64,000 nucleotides of DNA, taken from contig NW_005434662.1 of the NCBI RefSeq assembly GCF_000315625.1, positions 8,026 to 72,025 on the forward strand, in the 5' to 3' direction. A program made the position numbers and the translations under genes. The stretch comes from Guillardia theta CCMP2712. Its lineage: Eukaryota > Protista > Cryptophyta. The notes beneath the pieces are model-generated. The model worked only from the letters and a program-made list of their open reading frames with translations, was not told the origin of the DNA and ran no database searches. Below are positions 455 through 63,000 of the stretch, piece by piece. Within the stretch, counting starts at the first letter, position 1, and the number at the start of each line of letters is the position of its first letter.

Positions 455-1900
455 CGTATTTCGAAGTTGAGTGTGTCGATCTTTGTTACAAACTTGTATT
501 CGTCGCCTACTCGAGGTTCTTTCTTCCGGCCTTCTTCCTTTTCTTTCCTCTCCTTTTCTCTCTTCGCCACCTCCCCCCTATCTCACTCTTCTCTCTTTCC
601 CCCTCTTCTCCTATTCTCTCCCAATCTGTCTCTGCTCTGTTCTTTCCTCACTGCTACCCTCCGAGCATCTGGTCTCCTGCCCCTCCTCAGATCGTCTGTC
701 CAAATGGAGAGGAGGGTACATTCTTAGTAAAGGGGCTAAAACATTGTACACTTAATAATGCTTTACTAGTAGAATGATACTTGGCTGCGAGGAGTCCGCA
801 GTGGTAATCTGAAAAAAAACAATATCCGATCCATCGTATTGACAGTCGCGGAGGGAGAGAGTACCCCTACTTGTGTGGCGTCAAAGTAGTTTTTAAAAAG
901 GCACGAGTGACTAGCGCAGCGCCGAAGTGGCTAAAATCTTACTAATAAAACAATATATTTGTAGCACTTGTGTAATAAAAATATCCTGGCACGGCAGTTA
1001 TTATTATTAATAAAAGTAAAAGCATCACTCGAGGTCTTTCCAACTTTAGTTAACCTGGAGAAAGGGGTTTTAAGATCTAGGTTAAATGCAGGTGACCCTA
1101 GCTAAAGATTCCAGTTATCAATTTGTACCACAACGATTGCTTTTTTTAAACTGTCAACGATTTGTTCCATCGATGCATTCATGCGGTTGCCATGCTATCC
1201 AGAAAGAATGCAGATCTGATGCGTATGCGAAGGTTGCGTTGCTGTCATATGAGATTCCAGCTGTCAATGCAGGAAATCAACAACATGAAACGTACAGTAT
1301 GAAATCTTTTATTGCATGAACTTCCTAAATTCAAGCAAATGCTCACAATATTTGTGTACCCTTCAGGATTCATGTCTCCGATCCATGGTGACCGCAGATG
1401 AACTCACTGGAATCTGCTTGGCTTGACACATGCACAGGAAGCGGTGACGTTAGCCCGTTGGAATATCCTCTTCACCTCTGCCTGTTCTTGAACATATGCA
1501 TGATACTATGGAAAGATGCTGTATGTTAATCATATGTACCGTTGAACATTACATTTGGATTCGTTATCATTGTCCTCGTTGAACACACAACAGGAAAGCT
1601 TTCAGTAACACAATCTTGCTGTCTCAGGATGATAGTTGATGTTATGTTGTCAGTCAGATGGAGAGAAAGAGGTACACGAGAAGGAAGTCGGACGAGGCTG
1701 CGCACGCCATGCAGTGTACGCTATGTGGAACGCCCTGCCAGGGCGCCGCTCGTCGGCTTTTACCGAGATATCGAAACGTTGCGATTTAACCATTCAAAAA
1801 CGCTATTCAGGCCCTGAGAATAGTAGTGACATAGTGGACCAAGTTAAGTAAACCTTTAGTACCTACGGATTCAGAGCTTCCAGACTCGAGGCTCTCTCGA

Positions 1901-1966
1901 GTGTCCGACAGGGTCAAGCCGGGTTGATTATACTCGTACGAAATTTAACTTAACCTGACTAAAGAT
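1901..1966 (+). repeat. Degenerate copy of the ~160-bp intergenic element
   Basis: GTGTC..CAGGGTCAAGCC..TGATT..CTCGTAC..TTTAACTTAAC..TAAAGAT is collinear with the copy at 2774-2932. Confidence 0.6.
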
Positions 1967-2090
1967 ATCACCGTGATGACGGATGATTATTGAATTATCC
2001 TTTTTTAAAATGAGCACCTACCAACCAAGCCTGGCCTGGCACTCCAACACCCGTAGCAGCAAGACTGACCAACTTTGAAATAGGCTCCAG

Positions 2091-2221
2091 GATTGGGTTT
2101 GGTTCTCGCTGTCTTTTCTCTTCTCGCCGTTTGGCCTGTGCGACAGTGTCAGGGTCAAGCCTCCTCGCCGAGTCTCTCCTGATTGTCCTCGTACTGATTT
2201 TAACTTAACTTTGAGTAAAGA
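2091..2221 (+). repeat. Near-intact copy of the ~160-bp intergenic element
   Basis: GTTTGGTTCTCGCTGTCTTTTCTCTTCTCGCCGTTTGGCCTGTGCGACAGTGTCAGGGTCAAGCCTCCTCG...TGATTGTCCTCGTACTGATTTTAACTTAACTTTGAGTAAAGA is almost identical to 2811-2931. Confidence 0.92.
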
Positions 2222-2234
2222 GGGCTCCCCTTCA

Positions 2235-2760
2235 CACACGGTGGCACTCCGACGGGCCACCTCCTTGCGGAGGCTTCCCACACAGCCGCGCGGCACGAGT
2301 GGCCCGGGCCGGGGCTCAGTTGCGCAGTGCGGCGGCCCTGATCCGACTCTCAGCCAGGCCTGACTCCCCGAGTCCGGGAGTCCCGGTATCCCGGGGGCCC
2401 ATCATTGTCAAAAACACTGATGATGTGACATAGTACTCGTAGAAAATCCAGGATTAACTTCCCATCATGGCATGCCATCCGATCCGCCGGGAGTGGGCCA
2501 CCTCCAGTAGCCTTCCCGAGTCCGTCCGCGCATGATCGGCCAACCCGGCCGGGCGGCGATGGCCGCGAAGTACGGCCGGCGGCGCGGCGGCCCGCCTCAC
2601 TGCCGGCCCGGGCCCGGGCCGGGCCGATCGTAGTGATCGGCCCGCCACTCGTCAGCCGCCGGCCCGGGCCGGCCCGGGCCGATCGTAGTGCTCATTCCTT
2701 CGGCGGCGGCCACCGCGACATCGCTGGCATGGCCGCGCGGGGGACTTGTCCTGCGCGCCG
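2235..2760. promoter_or_regulatory. GC/CpG-rich intergenic island
   Basis: Dense GGCC/CCGG/CCCGGG words and short internal duplications, upstream of divergently oriented genes. The regulatory role is inferred from position only. Confidence 0.5.
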
Positions 2761-2773
2761 TTAAGTGAAGGTA

Positions 2774-2932
2774 TCAGTTAAGTTTGGGGGACAGCAGTCG
2801 GCAGGTTTAGGTTTGGTTCTCGCTGTCTTTTCTCTTCTCGCCGTTTGGCCTGTGCGACAGTGTCAGGGTCAAGCCTCCTCGACTCTCCTGATTGTCCTCG
2901 TACTGATTTTTCACTTAACTTTGAGTAAAGAT
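2774..2932 (+). repeat. Full-length copy of the ~160-bp intergenic element
   Basis: Matches the reverse-complement copy at 21005-21169 end to end (TCAGTTAAGTTTGGGGGACAGCAGT...TTAACTTTGAGTAAAGAT). Confidence 0.92.
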
Positions 2933-2949
2933 CTGCGTTCGCATTCAGA

Positions 2950-3370
2950 AGGACCCCCGAACACGTGCCATCGATTTTACCTACCCACCCCAACAACAAC
3001 CAGCATTACCACTCTAGGGTACGATTGAAGAAAAGCACCCCCACCCTCTTTTTCTATATACTCTTTCACTCCCTACCCCTCCCCTAGAAGCAGGGCCATT
3101 TAAAAAGCATGATGAGAGAGCAATTCACCTTTACTCACTTATGTCCTTCTTTGAAATCAGAGGTACCCCTGATTTTCTCTTTCGCACTACCCCTAGGGCA
3201 CCGCATCTACCACAGGATGCCATTGCTACCCTCCACCTCCAAGTTCACCACCCACTCACCCTTCTCCAAAGCTTCAATCACCCCCACCCTCTGTTGGTCA
3301 GTACTACCCCCAAGTATGAAGAAAACCCCGTCTTCCCTCCAAAATGTCCACCTGTCCATGCAGGGTTCGA
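2950..3370. other. TACCCC/CACCC-rich strand-skewed tract
   Basis: Repeated TACCC, CACCC and ACCCC words. Same texture as 30040-31340, 36120-36660, 41220-41970 and 51820-52060. Confidence 0.55.
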
Positions 3371-3869
3371 GATCCCATTGGGGCCGCTGCCGGTTCAGAC
3401 TTGCAGATGCTGCTCTTACGTTAGCCTATCTCCCTTGCCTGCGTACTGCAGGCTCCGCTCTCACGTGTTTGTGGAACCTCAACCCTGTATCCTTCTCTTG
3501 CTTACTTTCTCGAATTTAACCAGATTTCATGTGTTTTTGCTTTCGAATCGTGTACCATGATTTGCATGTTTGTCCAAGGAAATAAATTCAGTCGAAATGG
3601 AACGAATTGAACTGAAAGTCGGGGAGACTTTGTTTGACGTTGGCTCTGGTCTGACTATTTCGACCAGTTTTGATTGCTTTCGTGATGTCGGTTGTATCTA
3701 TCTCTGTGAAGGGAGCATTAAGAGTGTTCTGCTCTCGATTTGATTTCAATACGATTTACTGCACAAGTGACATGCTTAGATGGAGGCATAGAATCCAAAG
3801 AAATAATGAATATTTCATTTTCAGGAACCACAGTAAACTTCCTGGTTCAGCTTTCACATCGCATGCAGG

Positions 3870-8690: not shown

Positions 8691-8959
8691 CCTTGTCTTG
8701 TCGAATGTTATGCCCTGTTGCTTATGCCTCCTCTACCCAAGAGTCTCCCTGACCCCGTCGTGCCACTGAAGAACGGCAGCCCTTGCCAACTCGGAACACA
8801 GAGTTTTCTGCACTGTCCTTGAAGCAGCTGATCGAGCAAGAAAAGACGTGAGGCTTGTGACTTCTCCTCTCCTCCCTCTCCTCTCTCTCTCCTCTCTCTG
8901 CCTCAAAGCCTTGCTCCTCGTCGATCCCGTCCTTCCGCTGCTGACGACGACACCCCGCT

Positions 8960-9620
8960 GCCCCACCCGGACTCAGTCGCCAAGCAGTGCGGCCCGGACC
9001 CGCCTCCCGGGTCCCCGGCCCGGCCCGGCCCCCGCGGCCGCCGGGCCCGGCCGGGCCGCCCACGCAGCCTCCAAGGCAAGGCCCGGGGACTCAGCCGAAG
9101 GGCCCGGGAACATAAAAAGTAAACCCCGGGCCTGGCCGCCGCTTGACAGGCTCATCATGGCATCACTTCCAAAGTTCCGGGAACGGCCCGGGGCCCAGCC
9201 TCCGGGCGGCGCCGCGGCGGCCTGGCAGGCCGGGCTGGCTGGCGGCGGCCCAGCCGCTCAGGGGCCCGGGGCCCGGGCCCACCCCCGGTCACTGAGTCAC
9301 GGCGTGACCCGGAGGCTTCAGTTCCGATGACTCCTGGCAGCCTGAGCCCCGGCCGCCACCAGGCTCTCCTGATCATCGGATTGTCCTCGGGGGCCTCGTA
9401 CTGATTTTTATCTCATAGCGTATGTAACTTTGAGTATTTCGGAGGCTCTTGCCGGTCCGATCCGATCCGAAGCCTTGACTCTGTGAAGCCTCGGATGATG
9501 CATGTCCGCCGGCCGGCCCCCGGCCGGCGGGCCGCGGGCGGGTCACTGAGTCACCGGGCCGGGCAGTGGCCGAGTCGGACCCGGGCCCTCAGGCCAGTCG
9601 GGTTGGGCCCTGAGCGTCCG
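8960..9620. promoter_or_regulatory. GC/CpG-rich island between divergent LRR and PUF60 genes
   Basis: Extreme GC content, with GTCACTGAGTCAC twice (~9288, ~9543). Confidence 0.5.
9364..9436 (+). repeat. Insertion-interrupted fragment of the ~160-bp element
   Basis: CTCTCCTGAT[catcggat]TGTCCTCG[ggggcctcg]TACTGATTTT[...]TAACTTTGAGTA. Confidence 0.75.
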
Positions 9621-9794
9621 ATGACTCTTTAACTTGAAACCTTCACTCAAAGAATCCCCAAGAAAATGACGGAGGTTACGGAGGCGAGGGAACCAAATGG
9701 GAGGAAGAGGAGGAAGAGGAGGTAGAGGAGGTGTTGGAGGGGACGAGGAGGTGATGGAGGACGAGGAGTGCTGATGGTCGAGGACGAGGGAGAG

Positions 9795-15001: not shown

Positions 15002-15049
15002 TGTTCATCATCATTGACAGTCAGGAATCAGTTAGAGTCAGTTCTCAAG

Positions 15050-15530
15050 TCACTGAGTGAATCCGAGCGGCCTGACTCGCTTGAGGACCCTTGAAGTTTG
15101 TCGGCCCTGCAACGGTCGCCACCCTTCACTAAGCTTCAGCGGGGGGCGCTCACAGGCTTGGCAGGCAGGCAGCACTAGCCGCTGAGCCGCTGAGGACCAC
15201 TCCCCGGACTTCCGAGCAAGGCTCAGCGGCGGCTTGAAACCGTTACTTTCCCTTCCTGGACTCACTCGAGCGTCAGGGCAAGTCACTCCAGACGTTCTGC
15301 CTGTCTGATCGCACTGTCTCAGTGAAGTACTGATTGTCCTCGTACTACAAACAAGCCTGACGGTCGCGGCTTGACAAGCTCTTCTCTCACAAGCAGTGAA
15401 GGCTGCGATTGAAATATCCTTTACTCAAACTGAGTTAAGTTAAAACTCAGTACGGAAATCTGTTGATCCGGATGAGATCGGCAGAACTTCAGTAGTCATC
15501 AGAGCCGGGTCGGGCGACCGGGCCCCGGCG
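15050..15530. promoter_or_regulatory. GC-rich island with two element fragments (15330-15346 forward, 15419-15454 reverse)
   Basis: Exact 17-mer CTGATTGTCCTCGTACT, plus reverse CTTTACTCAAA[ctga]GTTAAGTTAAAA[c]TCAGTACG. GTCACTGAGTGA at ~15049. Confidence 0.55.
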
Positions 15531-15703: not shown

Positions 15704-16410
15704 ACCTTGTCCTGGAGACTACTACCTCTACTGCTTTGGTACTACCCTCCCCCCTCGAGCACAAATTGGGTTGGGTCAAAATGAACCCCCGACCCCGTCA
15801 TACAGATTGGGCAGTCCGCATCCCGTGTCGGAAACACGAGGGTGGAGGGGTGTAGACACCCTGGAGTCACAGCTCTCAGGTAGGGTGGGTGGATACGACA
15901 GCAGCAGAACTTCGAGAAGACTAGATTTAAAAAATGGTTTTATATCACAACAAAATTGATTCCACAAAACAGTGCAAGTTTCAAAATGAAGCGGAAATTT
16001 TACATATTTTGACTAAATTTCGGGAGATTTGGAGAAGCCTGTCTAAGCCGAGCCACGTGTGCCAATCAGCAATGGAATAAATAATCTAGACCTTCTCTCG
16101 AACTACCCCTACCCTCTAATTCAGACAAAATATTGACAATCAGATGGAACATTTTAATCACCGTCCACTCCTTCAAGAACAGAGTTGGCGTACCCAGATG
16201 AAAAGTTTTTTTTGGGAGGGTTTAGATGCCGGATTGGACGCTCTTCATACCACCGTCTTGCAGGGATCCATACTTTTTTTTAACGAAATGAAGGGCCCAT
16301 CCAATGGAGGGGGGTGGGGCATGTCAAAAGCGACCTAGATGCGGGGGTGGGGTGGGTTGGGGGGAAAGGCGGGAAAAGAAGTGTGAGGAGCTTCGGACAC
16401 AGCACGCGCC

Positions 16411-17253
16411 ATGTCCAACAAGGTACGCCACGCGTTGATAAGAGAAGGATGTAAACCCTACTGCTCCTTGTGTCTGCTTCTATGCAGGCACAGTTGTTTT
16501 GCTCGTCTGTTTTGTATTCCCTCTCTGTTTTAGCATACATTCGTAATGCTTTACTTTCCGAATATTGCCGTTGCTTGCTGTTGAGCCTTGCTGACTTGCT
16601 TGTAACAGAAAATTGATGGCCCAGCCATTGGCATTGACCTTGGAACCACCTACTCCTGCGTAGGAATTTGGCAAAATGAACGTGTGGAGATCATCGCCAA
16701 CGACCAGGGCAACAGGACTACTCCATCGTGGGTTGCCTTCACAGAGTCAGAACGCCTTATCGGAGACGCTGCCAAGAACCAGGCTGCGATGAATCCCCAC
16801 AACACCATTTTCGATGCCAAGCGTCTCATCGGTCGCAAGATGGATGATCCCTCCCTCCAGGCTGACTTGAAGCACTTTCCATTCAAGGTTGTCACCAAGG
16901 ATGGCAAGCCTCATATCCAGGCCGAATACAAGGGAGAGAATAAGACCTTCTCTCCTGAGGAAATCTCCTCTATGATTCTCACCAAGATGAAGGAGACCTC
17001 TGAGGCCTATTTGGGTAAGGAGGTCAAGCACGCTGTCATCACCGTTCCAGCCTACTTCAACGACTCCCAGCGTCAGGCCACCAAAGATGCTGGCTTGATT
17101 GCTGGTCTCAACGTTCTTCGTATCATCAACGAGCCTACTGCTGCTGCCATTGCCTACGGTCTCGAGAAGAAGGGTAGCGGAGAGCGTAACATCTTGATCT
17201 ATGATCTTGGAGGTGGTACTTTCGATGTTTCTCTTTTGACCATCGACGATGGA

Positions 17254-17288
<35 letters not shown>

Positions 17289-18552
17289 CTTGGGAGGAGA
17301 GGACTTCGACAATCGTTTGGTTCAGTTTGTTCTCCAAGAATTCAAGAGGAAGCACAAGAAGGATCCATCTGAGAACGCTCGTGCTCTTCGTCGTATCAGG
17401 ACGGCTTGTGAGCGAGCCAAGCGAACCCTGTCATCAGCGGCCAACACTACCATTGAGGTTGATTCCTGCTTCGAGGGAATTGATTTCTACACCAACATCA
17501 CTCGCGCCAAGTTTGAGGAACTTTGTTCTGACTTGTTCCGTGGAACCCTCGACCCTGTCGATCGCGTTTTGAGGGATTCCAAGATTTCTAAAGGCCAGGT
17601 CCACGAGATCGTTCTTGTCGGAGGTTCAACTCGTATTCCCAAGGTCCAGTCTCTCCTTCAGGACTTCTTCAATGGCAAGGAGTTGAACAAGAGCATCAAT
17701 CCAGATGAGGCCGTTGCCTACGGAGCTGCTGTTCAGGCTGCCATCTTGGCTGGAGTCGACTCTGAGAAGACGCAGGATCTTCTTCTTCTTGATGTTGCTC
17801 CCTTGTCCCTCGGTATCGAGACTGCCGGAGGTGTGATGACTAAGCTCATTGAGCGCAACACCACCATTCCCTGCAAGAAGTCCCAGGTCTTCTCCACGTA
17901 TGCGGACAATCAGCCTGGTGTGCTCATCCAGGTTTATGAAGGAGAGCGTCAGATGACTAAGGACAACAATCTTCTTGGCAAGTTCCAGTTGGATGGAATT
18001 CCCCCTGCCCCTCGTGGTGTTCCACAGATCGAGGTGTCGTTCGATCTCGATGCCAACGGTATCATGAACGTTTCGGCCCAAGACAAGTCCACCGGCAAGC
18101 AGAACAAGATCACCATCACTAATGACAAGGGTCGTCTCAGCCAGGATGACATTGAGCGCATGGTCAAGGAGGCTGAGCGCTTCAAGGAGGAGGACGAGAG
18201 GCAGCGCAAGAAGGTTGACGCTAAGAACTCTCTTGAGAACTACGCTTATTCTCTCAAGAACACGCTCAACGACGAGAAGGTTGCTGGCAAGCTCGACGAA
18301 TCAGACAAGTCTTCGCTCACCAGCAAAATTGACGAGACCATCTCTTGGTTGGAGAGCAATGCCAATGCTGAAGTTGAAGAGTTCGAGGCAAAGCAGAAGG
18401 CTCTGGAGGGTGTCGCCATGCCCATCATGACCAAGCTCTACCAGGGTGGAGGAATGCCTGATATGGGCGGCGGCATGCCTGACATGAGTGGTGGTGCTCC
18501 TCCTTCTGGTGCTGGTGGCGCTGGCGGACCTCACATCGAGGAGGTCGACTAA
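16411..18552 (+). CDS. HSP70: Cytosolic heat shock protein 70 (exon 1 16411-16422, intron 16423-16608, exon 2 16609-18552)
   Basis: MSNK|[19 protein letters not shown]...[48 protein letters not shown] and C-terminal GPHIEEVD. Canonical GT..GCTGAC..AG intron. Confidence 0.98.
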
Positions 18553-18578: not shown

Positions 18579-20335
18579 CTAGTAATAAATGATTTCGATA
18601 TCATTCATATGCAGTGGTTTGTCTTGATTGGTGCACACATTTCGGTTATTTCTTGATATCACTTCTTTCCCAAGAAAAGTGCCATGTTGGCAACCATGGC
18701 GGGTGGCCATCGGCGCACAGTGGACAGCCAATCAAGGTCTCTGCAGACTAGTCACAGAAAAGTCTACCTGGAGATAAGGGATTGCCTGTAGAGACTGCAT
18801 CCTGTCTGGATCTTGTTGCATGCGAATTCCCACTGGATTCAAATCAGAACCTCCCCTTCTAGGTTGCTTTCACCTCCGACTCAGCAGTCTCGCGATCCCC
18901 CGCACTCCATGCGATGGCGGCAAGAGCAACGTGCATGTCCGTGTAACCTGACAACTTATGACCATTTACAGCACATTCCATCAAACAGTGTTACCGGGAT
19001 TTCTCCGGATGATGTCCGACATCATCTGTTAGAGGCATCAGTACTAGTTGGTAGCGTAATCGCTTTTTTTTTACCTTGGTAGCTTCTTTCGTCTGTCCGA
19101 CCTGTAGGTGGTGCAATGGGTCAGCAGTGAACATGGTCAACCTCAAATCATCTGCCTGGTAGAGAGCGAGCGCATAATTCGCTCTCACGTCCAGTGCTCG
19201 AGCTTCATCTCTGAGCTGCGAATGCCAGGCGGTCAGTATGAGGAAGGAGGACGGCGAGAGATGTCATCGAACTACCGCGACAAACAATCGGTCGGAAGCT
19301 TCGTAGTCCACCAGTGCCTCATCTTGCAATGTTTAGACCCCACCGAGCTCAGGTTCAGCTCTCACTATATTTCCCCAGCTTGGCAAGAGCGTTCGCGCGA
19401 AAGGTGAGGACGTAAGGATTAACGCCTGTGAAGGATCATGCAGGAAAGAGGTCCTCCACTCGACCTTGCTCTCGACCTCCTCCCCACAGTTGGATGGCGC
19501 GAGAGTAATCTGAGGTGAGATGAGACAAGGAGATTCGCATCACACAACACGACCTTGGATTGCATCTTCCCAGTTGCCCAACCCTTCACTACACAATCCT
19601 CGCTGTCTCCTTGTCTCAATGCACATGCCTCATCTTGCATGCCTCACCTGAACGAAGGTGTCTGGGTACTCCATGTATATAGCCTTTCCATTCTTCTCCT
19701 GTAGCCACCATGAGCATATCTCTCTTTAGCTTCAGTTCAACATTCCTTTTGCCCTTCCTCCATGATCGCTAGGACTGTGTCGTAATCCTGCATCGGCGGC
19801 CTTGAGCAGGTACACAAGATTTTTCTAGTTCACCTGCTTGGCCTCTGAGAACCGTTTCAGATCCACCCGAGCATTTGCTCGAAACTGGAAACAGCATCAT
19901 GAACATTGAGCGGGAGTGAGTGTGAGACACCTTGAAGAGCTCTGCCAACTCATCACGAGGACGCTTCATGCGTTGCCAGCGCTCGATCGCTGAGGAGAAC
20001 AAACTCTCGGCTTCAGGCAGTCTCTTCCCATCGAACGCTCTGATGCCTCGCTGCACTATCTCTATGTCTTCATCTTGCGGCTTGTCCCACTTGACCTCCG
20101 CTGTCGCTGCACGGACGGGCAGCGACGCGGCTACGCAGATACCGACAAAAGCACGACGAGACCATTGAAGGGTCGCTTTGTCCCGAGCAGTGCAGGAGAG
20201 GGCCTGCAAGGGTCGGGAGGGAAGGCTCTTGAGCAGCCACAGAGGAGAGAGAGGAGACAGGAGGGGGGCTCGCAGAACGAAGGAGTCAACCGAGGACAGA
20301 AGCAGCACGATCCCCAAGACGCTTCTTTCCGCCAT
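18579..20335 (-). CDS. Plastid thylakoid-lumen TPR protein, multi-exon
   Basis: Signal peptide MAERSVLGIVLLLSSVDS|F, then a transit peptide, then a twin-Arg domain SRRAFVG..PVRA. TPR helices, with MRANYALALYQA and C-terminal DLDWLSTVRRWPPAMV typical of a cyanobacterial/plastid TPR family. The 3' end is approximate. Confidence 0.72.
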
Positions 20336-20379
20336 GATAAGCCCTTTAAAACTCCCAGATGTATCGCTCATACTTCCAT

Positions 20380-20744
20380 AGTACGGCGGCCCGGCCCGCC
20401 GAACGGTCCGGTCACGGGAGTCCGGCAGACCCGGCCGCCGGCCGCCGGGGCCCGCGTCACCGTGGCACGCCCGGCTGACGGCGTGCGGGAGTCGGCCGTC
20501 ACGGCCCGGCGTGACCCGGCCCAACTAAAAGTTGAGCGACGGGTGACCCCGTACCCGGAACAGTCACGGCGGATCATGGCGAGTCAGGGCTGCGGCCACC
20601 GGGTGCCCGGCGGCCAGCCTGGCAGGCCGCGCCGGGGCCCTCCGACTGCGGCAGCACTGGCCGGGGCCGCCGAGTGCCACGGTGTCTGGAGTCCCGGCCC
20701 GGGAGAAGCCAGGGCGGGCCGCCCGGCGCGGCAGCAGGCCCGCC

Positions 20745-20799
<55 letters not shown>

Positions 20800-21300
20800 A
20801 TGAGCCTATGATGCCCGGCGGGCCGGGGTCGGACGGTCCGGAGCCGTCACGGCGACGGTCCGTCGGGACTGGGAGTTCCGAGTCCGATGCCATGATGATG
20901 ACCCTCACTGAAATCAGACTCAGTCTGACTCAGTGGCGCGGGGGCCGGGTCACTCCGATGATGATCATAGCCTAGTAGCGGGCGGCGTCACGGTGTGACA
21001 GTCATCTTTACTCAAAGTTAAGTTAAAGATCAGTACGAGGACAATCAGGAGAGTCGAGGAGGCTTGACCCTGACACTGTCGCACAGGCCAAACGGCGATC
21101 AGAAGAGAAAAGACAGCGAGAACCAAACGGGCCCAATCCGGCCAACTGCTGTCCCCCAAACTTAACTGACAGTCACTGACTCGGTGCCGGCGGCGCACTC
21201 CGCAGTGCCCGGCCACCGTTCGGTACGGTGCCCGGTGGTCAAACGGCGGGCCGGGGCCGTGACCGTGACTGCAGTAGTGCTCCCGGGCCAGCCTCAGCGA
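20380..21300. promoter_or_regulatory. GC/CpG-rich island between divergent TPR and DENN genes, includes (GCC)n at ~20746-20797
   Basis: Extreme GC content, TGACTCAGT words, and one full copy of the element. Confidence 0.5.
21005..21166 (-). mobile_element. Full-length ~160-bp element, reverse orientation, flanked by a 9-bp direct repeat
   Basis: Reverse complement of 2777-2931. TGACAGTCA lies at both 20996-21004 and 21167-21175. Mobility is inferred. Confidence 0.6.
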
Positions 21301-21494
21301 GTTTGTGCGGAGTCAGCAAACTTGACTCGTACCCGTTACAGTCTGTTTGTGTGCGATCGGAACCTCAAATAAATTTTGAAATCACCTCTGGTTATTTCAT
21401 GTTTTAAAGCAAAAAATCAAAGCCTGCTCTCAAATTTCAATTTGAGTTTGCATGGCCGGGATGCCTGTGCGTGGAGAAGGTTGAAGGAGGAAGG

Positions 21495-41219: not shown

Positions 41220-41970
41220 CAAGGGGTAGTAGCAAGGCATCAGGGGGGTACTAGGTATATCCATAGGGTCCCATCGGCCACTTTACCCATGACTTTAGGG
41301 GTGGTAGATCGTGTCTCGTTTATACAAAGTGCAAGGGGTGGGTACTTAGGTCTATTGGGAAGGGGTACCAGAAATTATCACCGGTTATCGTTTGAAAGAT
41401 TGGGGTCCAAATATACTTTGTTGGAGAGTGCAGGGGTAGGTCAACAAATCTTGAAGGGGTGGGTTTCAGAATGAGGGTGGTGTGCATTCCGATGGGGTAG
41501 TCTCCTGTCAAATTAGGGTACCACAAGAAGGAAACAGGGGGTGTATACCATGAGGGGTAGTGTCAATTACTGGAAAATGAGGGGTAGTGAGAAATGAAGG
41601 GTCATTGGGTGGGGTAGATTTTACAGGGGGGTAGGGGTGAAACTTTCGGAGAGACTCTGGGACGATGATTGACCGAGGGTGGTCTAGGGGGTAGTAGCCT
41701 GGTCTAACGGCAGATCTTGAAGGTGGGGTAGATCATTGTGGCTGGGTGTGCAAAGGTAGGTAGTTTTCACCTAGAAAGAAGGGGTCGGGGAAACCTCGAC
41801 CAGACAGGGGGTAGTTGGTGATGAGGGTGGTACAGCTGGGGGTGGAGTAGGAGGAATGGGGACTGGTGTGTAACCTAACGATGGGAGGAGGGTGGGTGGT
41901 TATGAGGGGTAAATGGAGCTCGAGAGATGGGTAGGGGTACTGGGGAGGTCGAGGATTGCAGGGGTAGTGA
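41220..41970. other. GGGGTA/GGGTGG-rich strand-skewed tract
   Basis: Many GGGGTAG, GAGGGT and GGGTGG words. Confidence 0.6.
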
Positions 41971-42079: not shown

Positions 42080-42760
42080 TCACCACACGTTGCCGGGTCA
42101 CGGGGGTGCTCAATCGCAGACTGGCAGGCTTTGAGGGGTACTGACCGCGGCGGCTTCAGGCCGGTACCGGGGACCGTGACCCGGCCTACTAGGCCGCACG
42201 GTCCGGCGGGGCCCGGGCCGAGCCGCCTTACTACTACCGGCGGCGAGTTAGTTCCCTGCCAGTGCCAGCCTGGCACTGGGCCGCCTGGGCCCCAGTCGAG
42301 TGGCACTGCGGCCCGGGCCCGGAGCGGCGGCGCCGATGATGGCGCCGGCGGAACTTCCCGGAATCCGGCGGCACCGGGGTGACCATCGGACATTACAGTG
42401 ATGAGTCGTGGCACGGCGAGTCAACTTGGCTTAGGCTTCAAGGCTTGACAGTGACGGGCCCGGCCGCCCGGCCGCCGTTACGGCCCGGCAATCGCAGCCT
42501 GATTCAGTCACTGAGTGAAGTTCGGAGCTTCAAGTCAAGTTTTGCAACCGTTTAGTACTAACGGTTAGCAGGACACGGTGACCCATCCCAGTCACTGAGT
42601 GACCGGGTGCCGCCACTGCGATGATAAAGCCCCGGCGGACCGTGCTCCGTGACTCCGAGGCCGCCGGGCCGAGTTTCAGTCGGCTGAGCGCTCGGCCCGG
42701 GCCGGACCGCCGCGCCGGGGCCGCCGGGGCCGGCGGCCACGGCGCCGCCGACTCGATGCC
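42080..42760. promoter_or_regulatory. GC/CpG-rich island between divergent PH and coiled-coil genes
   Basis: Extreme GC content, with CAGTCACTGAGTGA twice (~42505, ~42589). Confidence 0.5.
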
Positions 42761-49837: not shown

Positions 49838-50398
49838 NNNNNNNNNNNNNNNNNNNNNNNNNNNNNNNNNNNNNNNNNNNNNNNNNNNNNNNNNNNNNNN
49901 NNNNNNNNNNNNNNNNNNNNNNNNNNNNNNNNNNNNNNNNNNNNNNNNNNNNNNNNNNNNNNNNNNNNNNNNNNNNNNNNNNNNNNNNNNNNNNNNNNNN
50001 NNNNNNNNNNNNNNNNNNNNNNNNNNNNNNNNNNNNNNNNNNNNNNNNNNNNNNNNNNNNNNNNNNNNNNNNNNNNNNNNNNNNNNNNNNNNNNNNNNNN
50101 NNNNNNNNNNNNNNNNNNNNNNNNNNNNNNNNNNNNNNNNNNNNNNNNNNNNNNNNNNNNNNNNNNNNNNNNNNNNNNNNNNNNNNNNNNNNNNNNNNNN
50201 NNNNNNNNNNNNNNNNNNNNNNNNNNNNNNNNNNNNNNNNNNNNNNNNNNNNNNNNNNNNNNNNNNNNNNNNNNNNNNNNNNNNNNNNNNNNNNNNNNNN
50301 NNNNNNNNNNNNNNNNNNNNNNNNNNNNNNNNNNNNNNNNNNNNNNNNNNNNNNNNNNNNNNNNNNNNNNNNNNNNNNNNNNNNNNNNNNNNNNNNNN
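49838..50398. other. Assembly gap (N run)
   Basis: Run of N. Confidence 0.99.
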
Positions 50399-53765: not shown

Positions 53766-54557
53766 GTTGCCCCAGAGTCGCTCCAAGCAATGACCAGGTG
53801 CTGGCGCCTGCAGGGGGCCTGGGCAAGCGAATGACGGACGAAGAGGAGGTGTGGGTGTGCGAGTACGGGCATGTCTGCGCCATGGTAGACGCCGAGAGCC
53901 TTGAGAGGAGGAGACGTTTGACACGTACTTAGCCGCAGGGCAGCAACGCATCGGTAATAGACGCTTACTGCTTCATCTACAACGAGCAACGGTCAGGAGG
54001 GAGGCGGAATGGTAGGAGGTGAGGGAGACTGACCAGATTCGTCGCACACGCAGGGGAGCGTTTCGGGCGTGGGGGCTGGCTTCAGAGCTGGGACTTGCAC
54101 AGCACAACACGTGGGCAAGGTGATGAGAGCAATGCGGTCGGAGTTTGTATTTTAAGGATGAAATGGTAGAATGGTATCTGATAAAGTGTTGAGAATTGAA
54201 ACGAGCCGAGGCTCTCGACCTGGTGGTCTTATCTTCCTTGTTGAACTTTTCTTTGAGGGTGCGAGGAGGAGAACGTTCAGAAGGATGGGAAAGAGGATTG
54301 GGAGAAGGATTGAGGTGTCGGACTCAACAATGGCACTTGAAAATGAGGATGAACGCTGTGCTGGATTCCTAGTTGCCGCGTGTAAGTTGTCGAATGTCCA
54401 GGATTTTTGAAGAATCAAGAGGAGAACGGGCATTGAATGCAAGTTTCATTAGCTGACCACAATAGGTAATCAAAAAGAAAAACAGAACGTGTGCCAACCT
54501 AACGCGTTACTTGAGTCAGGGGGGCATGAGCATACCTGGTCGCACATCAACCTTGGC

Positions 54558-55259
54558 TTATCTCGAACCCTTTCCCTCCTGCCGCAAGAAGTGCTTCTGC
54601 GCGTGCGACCGAACTTGCTCTTCTGATCTCGTCCCAATGTACTCTGAAATCTTCCCCGCTACTCCCATTCCAAGTCCCACCGACCTCCTCCCGTCCGGTC
54701 GCACCCGCCGGTCGGTATCTGCGAACATGGCGAGGGCCTCTAGGAACTTCGCCTCCTCCTCTGGTGACCACTGGCTGGAGTTGAAGATCGCCTTCTCCAG
54801 CTGCCGGCAGTAGTTCTTCAGCTCGTCCTGCGACTTCCTTGGCTGGCTGTACACGTCCGAAGGAGGAGGGCAGGGCTGGTGCTGGGAGAAAGACCCGCAG
54901 GAGGAGTTGGACTGAGGAGCGCTGAGGTGCGTGGATGGAGACGACACTGTTGAGTCTAGCAGCGAACGTGCATATGAACAAGGGCCTTCGACGTCCTCAT
55001 CCATGTGGATCGGCTCCGTTGATGACTGTGAGTCGCTATATGAGAGACCCGCTGGAAGGAGCAAGAGGTGTGAATGAGGGGTGGTCTGAGAAGAGTCGGC
55101 TTGATGCATACTGTCAGCGCTGTCGATGGACAGCTCCAATGTCTCCTCGTTCCTCAGATATGCTACAAACGAGTCGAGGAGACCGGTGCTGGACATGGCA
55201 AGGTCGGCAACCGCATCGTCCACAGAGTGGGCGGGGGAAAGGGGAATGTGATGGCACAT
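54558..55259 (-). CDS. MYB-related transcription factor, SHAQKYF class
   Basis: WSPEEEAKFLEAL...ISEYIGTRSEEQVRSHAQKHF. First in-frame ATG at 55259. Confidence 0.85.
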   Translation of the reverse strand: MCHHIPLSPAHSVDDAVADLAMSSTGLLDSFVAYLRNEETLELSIDSADSMHQADSSQTTPHSHLLLLPAGLSYSDSQSSTEPIHMDEDVEGPCSYARSLLDSTVSSPSTHLSAPQSNSSCGSFSQHQPCPPPSDVYSQPRKSQDELKNYCRQLEKAIFNSSQWSPEEEAKFLEALAMFADTDRRVRPDGRRSVGLGMGVAGKISEYIGTRSEEQVRSHAQKHFLRQEGKGSR

Positions 55260-55539
55260 GCTCGAAGAAGATGTGGAAGGAAGAGGAAGAGACAAGGTCT
55301 TGATGGGGGGCAAAAGAGTGAATGCGAGAGGAGGATAGAAGTAGCAGGAGGGGAGGGGCCGACGGGGGGAGGGAGGGGGAGGCGATTGAGAGCATGTCGA
55401 GGTCGGCAGGTTTCTTGATTGACGGCAAGAGGGGAGACAATGTCAGCAACTTGTCAGCAATGAGAACTCCGAGTGCGAAACGATGCGTTTGAGTGTTCTT
55501 TACCATCTAGTCAGATTTATTTTTAGCTACGTTTTTGCG

Positions 55540-56435
55540 GTTAACTCCGCTTCCGCGTTCTCGGGCCTTCTCCGACCCGACTGGTTGGAACTCCGGGCCG
55601 GGGAAGACTGAAGGGCCGGGCTCGGAGAGACAAGACCCGGTCAGGGTGATGAAGTAAAGGCCCCTCATCAGCCACGGTCGCTGACTCAGTGACTGCTTTA
55701 CTCCAAGTTAAGTTTACGAGCATTTATCACTGAGGAGAGTCGAGGAGCACGGAGCCTCGGAGGCTCAGCTTGATCGGACCCTGGCAGTCACGTTACTGCC
55801 AAAGTGACCGGGGCCCTGACACTGTCGCACTACTGGCCAAACGGCGCCGGCGAGAACTTCAAGGCTTCGGAAGACTCGGAAAAAACCGTGACGGGCCGAT
55901 CCGGCGGGCCCCGGGTGGCCGCCGGTACGGTAGGCCACTCGGAACGGTAGTCAGTACCGTACCGTACCGCTGGTGATCGGACTACTGGCCGCCGACCCGG
56001 GCCGGCGTACGCCGGGCCGGCGTGCCCGGCCGCCCGGCGGCCGGCGCCAGTGCAGTCACAGTGCCGCAGCCTCAGTGCCAGTGGGCCCGGCGGGGGGCGG
56101 CTCCGCCGGGGCCGCCGGCGCGGCGCGGCCCGGCCGCGGCCGTTCAACTTGGCAAGTTGAAGCCTCCGTCAGTTTGCCCGCCGGCACCGTCACGGCGCCG
56201 TCACGGCGCCGTCCCGGCGATCGGTGAGCCTGGAGGACGGCCGGCGTCCGCCGGGTCCGGGGACGTGACTCTGGCTCACGGCGCGGCGGCCGCGCCCCGG
56301 CCCCGGTCCACCTTTCAAAGTTCTCAGAACGGTCCAGCCGCCGGGCCGCCGCCCGCCGCCGGGGCCCGGTTTGATCAGTTCCGAAGCCTGTTTCAACGTC
56401 AACCTGAGTGACTGAGACGGTGCGGGCCTGAGCGG
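55540..56435. promoter_or_regulatory. GC/CpG-rich island between divergent MYB and Nop15 genes
   Basis: Extreme GC content, TGACTCAGTGAC at ~55682, and the hairpin TTCAACTTG-G-CAAGTTGAA at ~56142-56160. Confidence 0.5.
55696..55856 (-). repeat. Insertion-inflated reverse copy of the ~160-bp element
   Basis: CTTTACTCcAAGTTAAGTT..TACGAG..AGGAGAGTCGAGGA..CTTGA..CCCTGACACTGTCGCAC..GGCCAAACGGCG..GGCGAGAA, collinear with 21006-21100. Confidence 0.8.
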
Positions 56436-56955
56436 GTGTGAGGGTATCACTACCAAAGCTTCACGTGCGATGTAGAATGGAAATGGACGATGGGAAGCGG
56501 AGTACGAGGAGCAGGAGCAGAGGCAGGAGGAGTGATATAGGTGTAGGAAGAACAGGATGAGGCAGACGAAGAAGGATATTAGGAGAATGGTATGAAGAGA
56601 AAGAGGAAGGGGGTGGGGCAGGAGAGAAGGGGATGGTATGGTGTAGAGGAGTCTGGTTGTGGTAGAGGACGACGTGAAGGCGAGGACAATGACTATAAGC
56701 ACGAGAGGAGGCTGAGACTAGGTAAATGGTGATGAAAATAGAAGTCATGTCAATGGCAGGGGAGAAAAATCACAATGAGGTTGAGAAAGGCTAAGGTTTT
56801 CTCTGAACATGCCTGGGGAGTGCCGGCAGAAACTGAGGAGAAGGCGTAATTAAGGAAAGTGGAGGAAAGGAAGGAAAGGAGAGGGAAGTGGAACTAGATC
56901 AGCACAAGCTACAGGGGACATGTGATGGGATGAATCTTTGACATATGTGCAGATC

Positions 56956-58341
56956 ATGGTGGAGACCAAAGCTGCCAAGAGGAAGTCAGCGAAGAAGTGA
57001 GAGACATTGTATGTTCCAACTTGCCATGGTGTGATGTTTCGTGTAGAGTGGCTCGGAGGGCCTCAAACGAGATTGCGATCGAGAACAAGAAGAAGCTGAG
57101 CGCGAAGAAGTTGGCAAAGAATCCCAAGAAGGAGGAAAAGGAGGTTTTGAACGCTGAAGAAGTACTGAGACCTCTTACTCATACGCCTAGGAAAACTCAG
57201 GGGACGATGCCCTGGACAAGATTGATCTGGAAGAGCTCATGGGCTCAGCAGGAGAAGACGCTGAAGAGAGCGAAGAGAGCGAAGGGGAGGGAGATGGCTT
57301 CAAATCTCAACGACTTGTCGTGAAGTTGGACAAAGTTCAGGAGAAGAAGCTCAAATCAAAGTTGCAAGGAATCGACAAGCTCAACGGTCTTGCACGCTCC
57401 TTGTTACTCCTTGTCAGCTGAAGTTGGGCATGCAGTCACTGCAGATCCCACCAAGAGCAGCGTCGTCTACGTCGGACGCATCCCTTACGGGTTCTTTGAG
57501 GATGAGATGAGGGGGTATTTCTCGCAGTTCGGCGAGATCAGCAGGATAAGAGTGTCACGCAACAAGAAGGTGAAGCAGACGATGCTCTCAGTCTTCTTTC
57601 TCACCTTGTCTCCCACTCCTCCCCTAGCGTGCTTTTGTTCTCCTCAATCTTTCTGTCCTCCCCTCTCTCGCCTTGTACTCAGCCGCTCGCAAGTGATCCT
57701 GTTGCAACAGACGGGAAAGTCGAAGCATTATGCCTTCATTGAGTTCGAGCATCCAGAGGCAACTAACTTACTTACACCCTCATGTTACCGACGTGACATT
57801 CCCCACAGGTCGCCGAGATCGTGGCCACGACTCATGACAAGATGCTGCTCATGGACAGAGCGATTCGTTGTGCTGTTGTCCCCCCGAACAAGGTGATTGT
57901 AATGAAGTAGAGATGCCGTCTGTGGTGACGTCATCTTCTCAGCTCCATCCCGCCCTGTGGAGAGGCGCAAACAAGGTTTTCAAGCCGGCAAACTTCAAGG
58001 TGCCGCCCGTGGATATCCTTTGATCTTCCCTCCACTGAGCTCGCAAGTAGGCAAAGGCGATCGAGCAGACGCATCAGAAGAGGACAAGAGAGCAGGTAAG
58101 CGAAGCTCCTGGGCCCTTCCAGCCTGCTCAACTCCTGTCTCCCTTGCAGGAAGTGAAAAGAGTGAAGAAGCTTAAGAAGAAAGAGAGTCTGAAAAGGAAG
58201 CAGCTGGAGAAGGTGGTGCCTCACCTTGTGGGTCAGCTTATGACGTTGATACAGGCGGGGATTGACTACGAGTTCGAAGGATACTCGGCACAGGCTGACA
58301 GCAAACGAGCCAAGAGGATGAAGTTTAAGGACGATGAGTAG
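56956..58341 (+). CDS. NOP15: Nucleolar RRM protein Nop15/NIFK (60S biogenesis), multi-exon
   Basis: VVYVGRIPYGFFEDEMRGYFSQFGEISRIRVSRNKK|TGKSKHYAFIEFEHPE|VAEIVA, with C-terminal AGIDYEF. Confidence 0.88.
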
Positions 58342-58999: not shown

Positions 59000-59219
59000 C
59001 TGCAGATCAGCCCGAGATTAGCCCAATGTCATGCTGTAAGGAGGGACGAGGAGAGGACTGGGGATACAGCGGAGAGGACATCCGACCCTGATCGGAATCC
59101 GACTCAAGCAGACCAGCCTTGGAGTGGGACAGGAGCAGAAGAGGGGCAGGAGCAGGGACAGGGGCGAAAGGGCGAGGGCGAGGGCGAGGGCGAGGGCAGG
59201 GGCAGCGAAACTTGAAGGA

Positions 59220-59420
59220 GGAGCAGGACCAGGAACAGCAGGATCAGGAGCAAGAATAGGAGCAGGGGCAGGGGCAGGGGCAGGGGCAGGTGCAGGATCA
59301 GGAGCAGGATCAGGATCAGGATCAGGAGCAGGAGCAGGATCAGGAGCGGGAGCGGGAGCGGGAGCGGGATCAGGAGCAGGAGCAGGAGCAGGAGCAGGAA
59401 GAGGAGCAGGAGCAGGAGCG

Positions 59421-59485
<65 letters not shown>

Positions 59486-59526
59486 GGGAGCGGGAGCGGG
59501 AGCGGGAGCGGGATCAGGAGCAGGAT

Positions 59527-59557
<31 letters not shown>

Positions 59558-59648
59558 GGGAGCGGGAGCGGGATCAGGAGCAGGAGCAGGAGCAGGAGCG
59601 GGAGCAGGAGCAGGAGCAGGAGCGGGAGCGGGAGCGGGAGCAGGAGCG

Positions 59649-59683
<35 letters not shown>

Positions 59684-59695
59684 GGGAGCGGGAGG
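59220..59695. repeat. (GGAGCA/GGAGCG/GGATCA)n hexanucleotide repeat
   Basis: Direct observation. Confidence 0.92.
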
Positions 59696-60028: not shown

Positions 60029-63000
60029 ATGTCTTATTGTGATTCAATACGCAAAGAGCTCATGTGTATGACTTGCTGCAAGCATGACTCTTTTGCAGTG
60101 ATGGTGGTGTTGGCCGAAGCAGGAGCACCCTGGCTCCACAGAAGATGTCGCGACAGAGACTTGGGAGCAGATCATTGCGGTCTCTTCACGATTGAGGAGG
60201 AGGGCCCTCTAGACGTGTGCGGGCTGATGGACGATGGCCCAACATCAGCAGCACCCTGCAGCGAGGCTGACTTGAAGAACGCTCTGCATCTTACCAAGGG
60301 GATTCGAGTTAGCTGGCAAGAGCTCCCTGCTGGTCTGAGGATGGCGCTGTTTCCTGCCATGAGGGTGGCGATGGCGCTTTTCTTACAGAGAACCCATCAG
60401 TCGGGTGATAGCAGCTTCTTGAACAGAGATTCTCTGCACAAATGCGAAGAATGCATTCGACTTGCTCTGCAAGGGTTCGACAAAGTTCGACTTGGAGGCG
60501 GAGTGAGTGTGCTGAATGTCGTCGATGCCATTCATGCGATCTTGATGCTGCTGCCAACATCCTGTGTTGACATCGGCAAACGTTGGGAGTGGATCAGAAT
60601 GCTGACAGATGTTTCTTGTGTGCAGCATGTTGCGGTCGAACAGGTCTGACGAAGACAGCGGTCATGTTGCTACGCTGACGAGACGTGCAGAGTGAGTTGT
60701 CAATCAACGAGATCTGCCTGAATGACAAGCTGGGAGCCTCGAGCCCTTTGAGAAGATCGATCTCGGTAAGGATTGAGATGATTGCTTCGGGGATGATGAT
60801 GGAGATGAAGATGATGGTGATTAAGAATCTCGATCGGTTTAATCATCATGATAATGATTGTGACAGAGAGTTTGTGTTAGAAGAGATGTGGTGTAGCGAG
60901 GGATGTGATATACTTGTACATGTTTCAATCGTATCTCACCATCATCCGCCGATATTTTAACTTGAAATGTCAGATTTCCTTGCTTGCAAACCTCAGCTGC
61001 AAACTCGAATCAGGTGAAGGGCAAGTGGTAAGAGGAAGTTTGCGCTCAGTTGATAGTGCAGGGAGCGAGCAAGTGACGAAACAGATGTTCATCATCATCA
61101 AGAACATGTCAAACGCCCTCTTCTTGTCTATCGACAACTCCAACAGACCTGATGCACCTAGCTGTCGAAACATGATGCACGTTCCGAGCTCTTCGGCCAT
61201 GAAATTGGTGATGTCAGAGAGCAAGAAGGATTTGGGGAAAGACATCTCGACAAGAAACTGTCACGATCATCGCACTTCGCAATCTCTGGAGAGAGCAGAA
61301 GAAGTCGAGACAAGCTCTCATCACGATGTTTGCACCATGGCATGCATTGGATCCCTTGTGAGTTATGCCTGTCCCAACTCGTTCCATTCTCATCATCTCG
61401 TTCTCTTTGATATGCTTCTCTGCTTCTTCTTGTGTTTGCTCGTCTTGTCTTTCCTTTGAGATAGTTCCATTCTTGATGTCTTGACTCAGGTGAGAGTCAT
61501 CTTGTACTGGACGGATCAGATTTTTGTTGTCACTCATGGAGGAGCGAGGGATGGAAACGTCGAGAAAGCTCCTTGTCGACAGAGCCATCAGCAGAAGCTT
61601 CGTTTCAAGAGCAACAGCTGTGATGCTCAGAATTGTTTCGTGTTCGGAGGAATCAGAACGTTGTTTGAGGTAGAAAGAATAGAACAAACCTTTCCAGCTC
61701 ACGTTACTCTGTCAGGCGATGCGAAGACATTCAAGTTCGATGAACAAATGGCACAAGTTGTCATCATGATAGATTGAAGTGAATCTGAGATGTTGTGAAC
61801 AGATGGAGCCTGTGTCATGGGCTGTCGAAAATTCTCGAGAGTGAAGCACTCTGGCATCTTGTTTCAAGGTTGTTGTGATTTCAATGTCCTGAATGTTTGA
61901 GATAATATGACTATATCGACGTTTTTTCATCATGATGAAGAACAAGGAATTGATGATGATGATGATTAGGAGGAGGAGGANNNNNNNNNNNNNNNNNNNN
62001 NNNNNNNNNNNNNNNNNNNNNNNNNNNNNNNNNNNNNNNNNNNNNNNNNNNNNNNNNNNNNNNNNNNNNNNNNNNNNNNNNNNNNNNNNNNNNNNNNNNN
62101 NNNNNNNNNNNNNNNNNNNNNNNNNNNNNNNNNNNNNNNNNNNNNNNNNNNNNNNNNNNNNNNNNNNNNNNNNNNNNNNNNNNNNNNNNNNNNNNNNNNN
62201 NNNNNNNNNNNNNNNNNNNNNNNNNNNNNNNNNNNNNNNNNNNNNNNNNNNNNNNNNNNNNNNNNNNNNNNNNNNNNNNNNNNNNNNNNNNNNNNNNNNN
62301 NNNNNNNNNNNNNNNNNNNNNNNNNNNNNNNNNNNNNNNNNNNNNNNNNNNNNNNNNNNNNNNNNNNNNNNNNNNNNNNNNNNNNNNNNNNNNNNNNNNN
62401 NNNNNNNNNNNNNNNNNNNNNNNNNNNNNNNNNNNNNNNNNNNNNNNNNNNNNNNNNNNNNNNNNNNNNNNNNNNNNNNNNNNNNNNNNNNNNNNNNNNN
62501 NNNNNNNNNNNNNNNNNNNNNNNNNNNNNNNNNNNNNNNNNNNNNNNNNNNNNNNNNNNNNNNNNNNNNNNNNNNNNNNNNNNNNNNNNNNNNNNNNNNN
62601 AATCATCTCGCCCTCCCTCCGCGCCTCCCTCCCTCCCGCCCGCCCTCCCGCCCTCCCTCCCTCCCTCCCTCCCTCCCTCCCTCCCTCCCTCCCTCCCTCC
62701 CTCCCTCCCTCCCTCCCTCTGTTCCTCTTCCTCTCTCTCCTGCTCGTTCTTTCCTCTCCTCCTCCTCGTCACCTTGCACGTATCTCCCCTCACACATTCT
62801 TCTTTCTGTTTGTCTTGCTCCCTCGCCGTGTTCTTCCGCATCCGACTCACTCCGCCTTCTCACACTCCCAGGAGCTCAAGTGGACCATCGTCGAGGTTCT
62901 GAATCGCTTCATCCTCCACGTCAGGAGCCTCGAGAAGAGGAGGACAGACAAGGAGGAGGCAGGAGGAGAGGGAGGGGAGGAGAGAAAACGTCTCCTCCTG

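Follow-up and report, generated by a model that had tools for sequence, protein, structure and literature searches.

Insertion-driven lengthening of a dispersed element beside GC-rich islands of Guillardia theta, with a three-base scar design suggestive of hairpin-type excision footprints

Introduction

Cut-and-paste excision through DNA hairpins leaves recognizable footprints, as known for hAT elements, for CACTA/En-Spm elements with their 3-bp target duplications, and for the P nucleotides of V(D)J joining. In decaying DNA generally, small deletions usually outnumber insertions. Break repair offers another route to short insertions: SD-MMEJ uses loops and hairpins within 30 nt of a break and iterates (PMC5728401, PMC4912351). 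Template switching during replication creates hairpins (PMC5453318, PMC8794818).

Here we analyse a 64,000-nt stretch of nuclear DNA from the cryptophyte Guillardia theta CCMP2712, called the window below, in which a dispersed element borders GC-rich islands. A preliminary description, made from the sequence alone, had proposed that element copies decay there by inflation, through locally templated micro-insertions. A literature search found no paper describing these islands, or the scar reported below, in G. theta.

Results

The window was assigned to scaffold JH992976.1 of assembly GCA_000315625.1, and its Hsp70 product is 100% identical to 'heat shock protein 70 [Guillardia theta CCMP2712]'. 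The DNA is eukaryotic, rich in genes and interspersed with numerous low-complexity tracts. Two Hsp70 paralogues led to 24.5 kb of a second scaffold (L003), and the sample comprises ten element copies from these 88 kb; the whole genome, described by Curtis et al. in 2012, reportedly measures ~87 Mb. Assembly gaps (N runs) at 49838-50398 and 61981-62600 are bordered by CCTC/CCCT-type simple repeats, and an imperfect (AGGAGC)n array of ~79 units, with several frames open on both strands, occupies 59219-59694. Another dispersed repeat family lies at 1500-1834, a stretch that reads and contigs cover ~5-10 times as deeply as unique DNA and for which several variant contigs are found.

The consensus of the element, ~170 nt long, was derived from three near-identical copies (Table 1) and starts with CTTTACTCAAAGTTAAG. 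When public 38-nt DNA reads were placed on 1500-3500, depth was ~2100 on the element core versus ~3-9 in the unique flanks, and one element position was covered by >120 contigs; read depth and contig number thus indicate a family of several hundred copies. The element has a sharp common end at 2929-2932 (CTTTACTC...), where many contigs begin their loose ends; towards its other end, read depth declines. At the few positions listed in the variant-letter table of the pile-up, the majority letters agree with the consensus. No terminal inverted repeats were recognised, the one inverted match seen being internal and 8-9 nt long (AGTTAAGT), and of the copies only that at 21002 has a flanking repeat, of 9 nt. 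Some traits recall a Helitron, namely the TC start and an A before some copies, without a CTRR end or a consistent site between A and T. An Rfam scan of the window gave no match, and the element is therefore not a known RNA gene; a metagenome scan with the element core gave no match either.

Of the ten copies, eight are no more than a few bases away from an island, and a copy accompanies five of the seven large islands. The habitual place of the element is the border of an island that is rich in GC, dense in palindromes, undepleted in CpG and situated in 5' intergenic DNA. At two loci (2076-2932 and L003:16457-17429) two copies in the same orientation enclose an island; these paired copies look like independent insertions, since they have no private variants in common. 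A third, decayed copy follows the first of these pairs.

Table 1. Element copies, GC islands, scars and neighbouring genes; positions are those of the window unless prefixed L003
Feature	Position	Strand	Details
Inflated copy	55695-55853	+	nhmmer E 3.3e-9; HMM positions 6-104 (~99) over 159 nt
Inflated copy	9362-9436	-	nhmmer E 5.8e-5; HMM positions 10-56 (~47) over 75 nt
Inflated copy on other scaffold (L003B)	L003:17215-17429	same orientation as its partner	consensus 13-126 in 183 nt
Near-consensus copy abutting island 20170-21000	21002-21183	+	used for consensus; two small insertions (ATC, CGGG)
Near-consensus copy, one side of island 2226-2760	2762-2932	-	used for consensus and HMM; read pile-up
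Near-consensus copy, other side of island 2226-2760	2076-2223	-	used for consensus; one 5-nt insertion
Old copy outside an island	1905-1966	-	~15% substitutions, deletions, shortened, no inflation
Diverged, shortened copy	15293-15346	-	12-nt deletion; E 0.09, weak
Short copy	15419-15455	+	4-nt insertion completing an 8-bp inverted repeat
GC island	55857-56446		GC 0.73, CpG o/e 1.13; hairpins 53 vs 14.5 expected, z 8.2
GC island enclosing the 9362-9436 copy	8871-9641		hairpin z 5.6
GC island on L003	between two same-orientation copies		~690 nt
Perfect scar GAG-C-CTC-G-GAG	55752-55762		inside 55695 copy; removal moves copy towards consensus
Perfect scar GAT-C-ATC-G-GAT	9371-9381		8-nt removal restores consensus exactly
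Two overlapping perfect scars	55682-55694		directly before the element's sharp end
Called gene, faint Myb domain annotated	~54342-55043	-	flanks 55695 copy and its island
ORF in different register, Myb-like motif	54558-55313	-	same region as 55695 copy
RRM gene (called)	~57246-57807	+	other flank of 55857-56446 island

A profile HMM of the three near-identical copies identified, by nhmmer, five further copies in the window, and all matches were used, none being selected. The preliminary description had held that consensus sequence is stretched at 55696-55856 and at 9364-9436, and the profile confirmed this, with ~99 and ~47 consensus positions now extending over 159 and 75 nt. The first of these copies is intergenic, lying between two divergent called genes with a 590-nt GC island directly after it. 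The consensus blocks remain in order, with one mismatch in ~69 aligned block positions in the 55695 copy and one in ~45 in the 9436 copy, and alignment scores exceed those of dinucleotide shuffles by z 14-20 and 11-18, respectively; the inflated half of L003B reaches z 7.6-11.9. The 55695 copy has six or seven insertions and one deletion, and the 9436 copy has three insertions, of 11, 9 and 8 nt. Four inserts quoted earlier as examples, among them CCTCG[gggg]CCTCG and GAT[catcg]GAT, are all present in the sequence in that form. In L003B, eight of the nine insertions fall in the half nearer the island (Fisher p 0.0017), and the half away from it is nearly intact. Beyond consensus position ~100 in the 55695 copy, or ~56 in the 9436 copy, the element could not be traced into the island above chance.

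Read data argue that the lengthened sequence is real. The 31-mers of 55640-55900 are present at 0.96 in contigs from two studies (2011 and 2021), and because the read sets of both studies contain it, the stretched sequence is not an assembly artefact, a possibility that the preliminary description had itself raised. For a neighbouring island, the assembly and a 2021 contig are identical over 382 nt, with no change. At 2237-2571 an island is uncovered in the contigs of the 2011 runs and covered by 2021 contigs and 2026 raw reads; the missing coverage probably reflects GC-related loss, and it explains why the word share of the 2011 runs is 0.85.

Each insert is missing at the same position in all other copies, old diverged ones included, and the inserts are therefore derived rather than ancestral. 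This is also a difficulty for the view that the long copies were never consensus-like, representing instead a longer subfamily or extra sequence gained at transposition, or that they result from permissive alignment or selection. That view could appeal to a consensus that rests on three copies and on majority letters at a few pile-up positions, and to event counts that shift with gap scoring. Yet the inserts also differ between copies, the insertions form an island-ward gradient within one copy, every nhmmer match entered the analysis, and aligner effects are controlled by re-alignment bootstraps, which makes it hardly credible. At almost identical consensus positions (~21-26, 35-37 and 42-49), the 9436, 55695 and L003B copies contain insertions that differ from one another, and this recurrence in independent copies suggests preferred sites.

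Event counts vary with alignment scoring, and strict gap penalties merely drop the inflated parts. Under insertion-favouring scoring, eight island-adjacent copies (825 positions) have 19 substitutions, 30 insertions (241 nt) and 3 deletions (12 nt). Under symmetric scoring, for which the short 15419 copy was moved to the class of other copies, the seven island-adjacent copies (791 positions) have 22 substitutions, 20 insertions and 5 deletions (binomial p 0.004), and the other three (162 positions) have 21 substitutions, 5 insertions and 7 deletions. The proposed decay by inflation is thus seen in the island-adjacent copies, where insertion events (20-30 over the scorings) are as frequent as substitutions (17-22) and far above deletions (2-5); in the three copies away from large islands, indels are balanced and substitutions many. 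All scorings that retain the inflated parts agree in this direction, in what is a small sample. The inserts are GC-rich, with a GC content of 0.6-0.7 versus 0.47 in the consensus. Near-consensus copies touch islands undamaged, so the process is patchy or slow.

The islands have a GC content of 0.66-0.73 and a CpG observed/expected ratio of 0.84-1.13, compared with 0.70 for the whole window, a contrast that loss of CpG through cytosine methylation outside the islands would be expected to produce. Short hairpins in the six larger islands are 3-4 times as frequent as in dinucleotide shuffles (z 4-8), those in a seventh, small patch of 208 nt (21123-21330) 2.5 times (z 2.0), and GC-rich coding DNA shows no hairpin enrichment. 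Odd palindromes in the islands have G or C at the centre 165 times versus A or T 13 times. K-mer repeats, direct as well as inverted, are enriched whatever their distance, which reflects a common vocabulary (e.g. CCGGGCC and GTCACGG), and spacers of <10 nt show an extra excess. The islands also have words of 15-44 nt in common, in no fixed order; since no collinear homology was found between them, they are not the internal part of one transposon.

Promoters of the Hsp70 paralogues, examined as an independent clock, contain no island. The window Hsp70 (16400-18552), in which an intron follows the first few codons, has no island, and the two Hsp70 paralogues at L003:7493-11956, arranged head to head, enclose an AT-rich promoter region that contains GAAnnTTC words resembling heat-shock elements and lacks a GC island. 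G-tracts of the GGGGTA or GGGTGGGG type occur just outside islands or promoters, at 41900-41970, 16300-16365 and L003:16290-16325.

Templating was assessed against the reconstructed pre-insertion sequence, and each simulated copy was re-aligned, which controls for aligner artefacts. The earlier proposal of templates within ~30 bp is upheld within 15 nt, for direct copies as well as for snap-back copies at junctions. Direct copies of ancestral bases within 15 nt number 63 in the inserts, against 45.2 +/- 4.3, a value exceeded in none of 300 re-aligned simulations; with the symmetric aligner the signal has p 0.003. Insert ends forming the reverse complement of the adjoining flank, with at most one base between the two, number 34-39 against 18-22 +/- 3.8 (p <=0.003 with both aligners). 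When inserts were permuted among sites, the direct and junction snap-back signals both had p 0.002. For longer inverted copies within 15 nt the signal is marginal (p 0.02-0.05), and palindromes with stems of at least 4 bp across junctions show only a trend (4 vs 1.45, p 0.087). A first version of the test, with the template arm wholly outside the gap and a spacing of up to 30 nt, was not significant, nor was the count of strict direct repeats immediately flanking each alignment gap (16 vs 13.7).

Among the inserts and throughout the islands, one design stands out: a triplet X, a C, the reverse complement of X, a G, and X again (X3-C-revcomp(X3)-G-X3). Counted in 4.9 kb of islands and for X containing A or T, it occurs 22 times, where dinucleotide shuffles predict 0.09 instances and an order-3 Markov model of the islands predicts 0.29. 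With the centres swapped to G and C there are 2 instances, with C/C and G/G centres together 6, and with arms of 4 or 5 bases and C/G centres none; centre lengths peak sharply at (1,1), with 32. Outside the islands, 82 kb contain four C/G scars. The scars are built on 14 different triplets, and those that recur are ACT/AGT, CAT/ATG, CAC/GTG and TCA/TGA; the recurrence may reflect a target preference. One of the quoted inserts, GAT[catcg]GAT, is a perfect scar (Table 1), and removal of perfect scars shifts all three inflated copies (9436, 55695 and L003B) towards the consensus. Clean scars are 3-5 of the ~25-30 inserts, most inserted bases being unparsed; perfect scars occupy ~5% of the bases in the islands and explain ~10-15% of the divergence, in edit distance, that separates the inflated copies from the consensus. 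The remaining divergence looks like partial, nested or different events, and irregular forms include GCT-C-AGC lacking its second half, GGC-GCC-GGC with no centres, and a pair of 7-bp arms that flank a G.

The word AGTCACTGAGTCA, in either orientation, is found repeatedly in islands, at 9287-9299, 9541-9553, 15048-15058, 42506-42516, 42590-42600 and 55682-55694. It was considered as a bZIP or AP-1-type site on account of its AP-1-like TGAGTCA core, and was set aside: it equals two overlapping X-C-rc-G-X instances, and as it is an instance of the scar design, no binding site is claimed for it.

The 6-mer vocabulary of the inserts is that of independent islands (p 0.001). This likeness, together with the 8/9 gradient of L003B, supports in part the earlier interpretation, in which repeated insertion builds up the GC texture of the islands as putative break hotspots, with the element as a possible clock; the gradient comes from one copy. 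Shared vocabulary would also be expected if small GC-rich palindromic mobile units inserted side by side with short target duplications and peppered the adjacent copies; direct repeats of 3-7 nt do border some inserts, and the islands do share their 15-44 nt words. However, matches of the inserts elsewhere in the 88 kb are no longer than those of random island segments, recurring units with defined ends were not found, the islands lack collinear homology, and the inverted part of the clean design copies the local site rather than imported sequence. We regard such units as very improbable.

Two mechanisms had been named for the inserts, polymerase-theta end joining and hairpin-type excision footprints, and the design bears on both. 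In the polymerase-theta pathway, synthesis primed on loops or hairpins within ~30 nt of a break would give direct and snap-back insertions, and templating of both kinds from flanks within 15-30 nt is indeed significant here. The pathway nevertheless predicts no fixed 3-base duplication, no fixed centre letters and no C-then-G handedness, and deletions expected at its junctions are rare beside the insertions in island-adjacent copies (2-5 vs 20-30). Hairpin-type footprints are therefore favoured, given the fixed 3-base design with C then G and the scarcity of deletions, and the polymerase-theta pathway appears unlikely.

Replication template switching in hairpin-prone DNA would make or extend inverted repeats, and it would be self-reinforcing in palindrome-rich islands. 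An event of this kind can be seen in the 15419-15455 copy, where the 4-nt insertion and a nearby substitution together yield a perfect 8-bp inverted repeat, and inverted and direct k-mers, which are locally in excess where the spacer is <10 nt, point the same way. Template switching mostly replaces sequence, however, adding little net length, and it gives no reason for the C/G centres (22 vs 2 swapped) or for the sharp peak at 3-base arms; as a general account of the inserts it seems quite improbable.

Discussion

Hairpin-type excision offers an attractive explanation for the lengthened copies, and we consider the chances about even that they grew in place by repeated small insertions through a cut-hairpin-rejoin reaction with a 3-base stagger. 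An element copy would land by an island and then grow through such insertions. In each event the DNA would be cut with a 3-base stagger, and each flank would be closed to a hairpin whose tip retains a single terminal base from the excised segment. The hairpins would then be opened, the two ends would anneal through the inverted triplet, and fill-in synthesis would convert a 3-base site X into X-C-rc(X)-G-X. The longer and messier inserts would come from imprecise and nested events. The logic is that of the hairpin excision footprints of hAT, CACTA and V(D)J chemistry.

From the inserts we infer hairpin chemistry, a transposon or nuclease as the agent, and islands built by scars. A candidate agent would be a cut-and-paste transposon that duplicates 3 bp of its target and has C...G termini, or a related nuclease. 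No transposon with these features was noticed in a general inspection of the 88 kb, and no filled/empty site pair was found there; the abundant element itself starts with C. Because each event would add a C, a G, and local direct and inverted copies, repetition would push a region towards a GC-rich, palindromic texture, and the island texture and the GC content of the inserts match the expected gain. More tentatively, the promoter-side islands may be largely nested scars of one 3-base-stagger enzyme, a transposase or derived nuclease, such that a single process would write promoter-type DNA de novo and destroy the repeats that land there, with X-C-revcomp(X)-G-X as its signature; this extension we regard as possible rather than probable.

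In these copies, a localised process reverses the usual deletion bias, at a pace rivalling that of substitutions, and its signature, having a fixed geometry and handedness, can be counted. If the pattern proves genome-wide, it would explain mechanistically how a whole class of regulatory-region DNA arose in a cryptophyte. It would also allow the enzyme behind the scars to be dated and mapped in its activity, and would illustrate in nature how footprints of repair or transposition can shape base composition and secondary-structure potential.

Among regulatory DNA, vertebrate-type CpG islands resemble the islands described here in base composition and CpG content (GC 0.66-0.73, CpG o/e 0.84-1.13) and in their 5' and divergent intergenic location. 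They differ from them in that hairpin palindromes are 3-4-fold in excess in the G. theta islands, which also have a vocabulary of words in common; not all promoters here have an island, those of Hsp70 being without one. Some organelle genomes contain mobile GC clusters and palindromic repeats (e.g. PMC4524435), which also represent GC-rich palindromic DNA that accumulates in non-coding regions. Here, in contrast, the DNA is nuclear, sequence families are lacking, and it is the local site that the inverted parts copy.

Short template-switch mutations (PMC5453318, PMC8794818) share with the present inserts the perfect short inverted repeats taken from neighbouring sequence, sometimes with several changes per event. 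The G. theta events differ in their net insertion instead of replacement and in their constant centre letters. SD-MMEJ and polymerase-theta repair (PMC5728401, PMC4912351) likewise copy from ~15-30 nt away, in direct and snap-back fashion and in iterated events, whereas here a fixed 3-1-3-1-3 design with handedness is found and deletions are almost lacking.

The comparison with hairpin-type excision footprints, made by their generally known features, is the closest. Such footprints, like the scars described here, keep the duplication on both sides, carry short inverted copies of the flank at the joint, and gain a few bases per event with a stagger of fixed length. Both a duplication of constant length (22 instances with 3-base arms, none with 4 or 5) and an inverted flank copy at the joint are present in the islands. 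Unlike known footprints, the scars are concentrated and nested in promoter islands, they have an apparently constant C and G at the two centres, and they occur among inserts most of which are longer or irregular.
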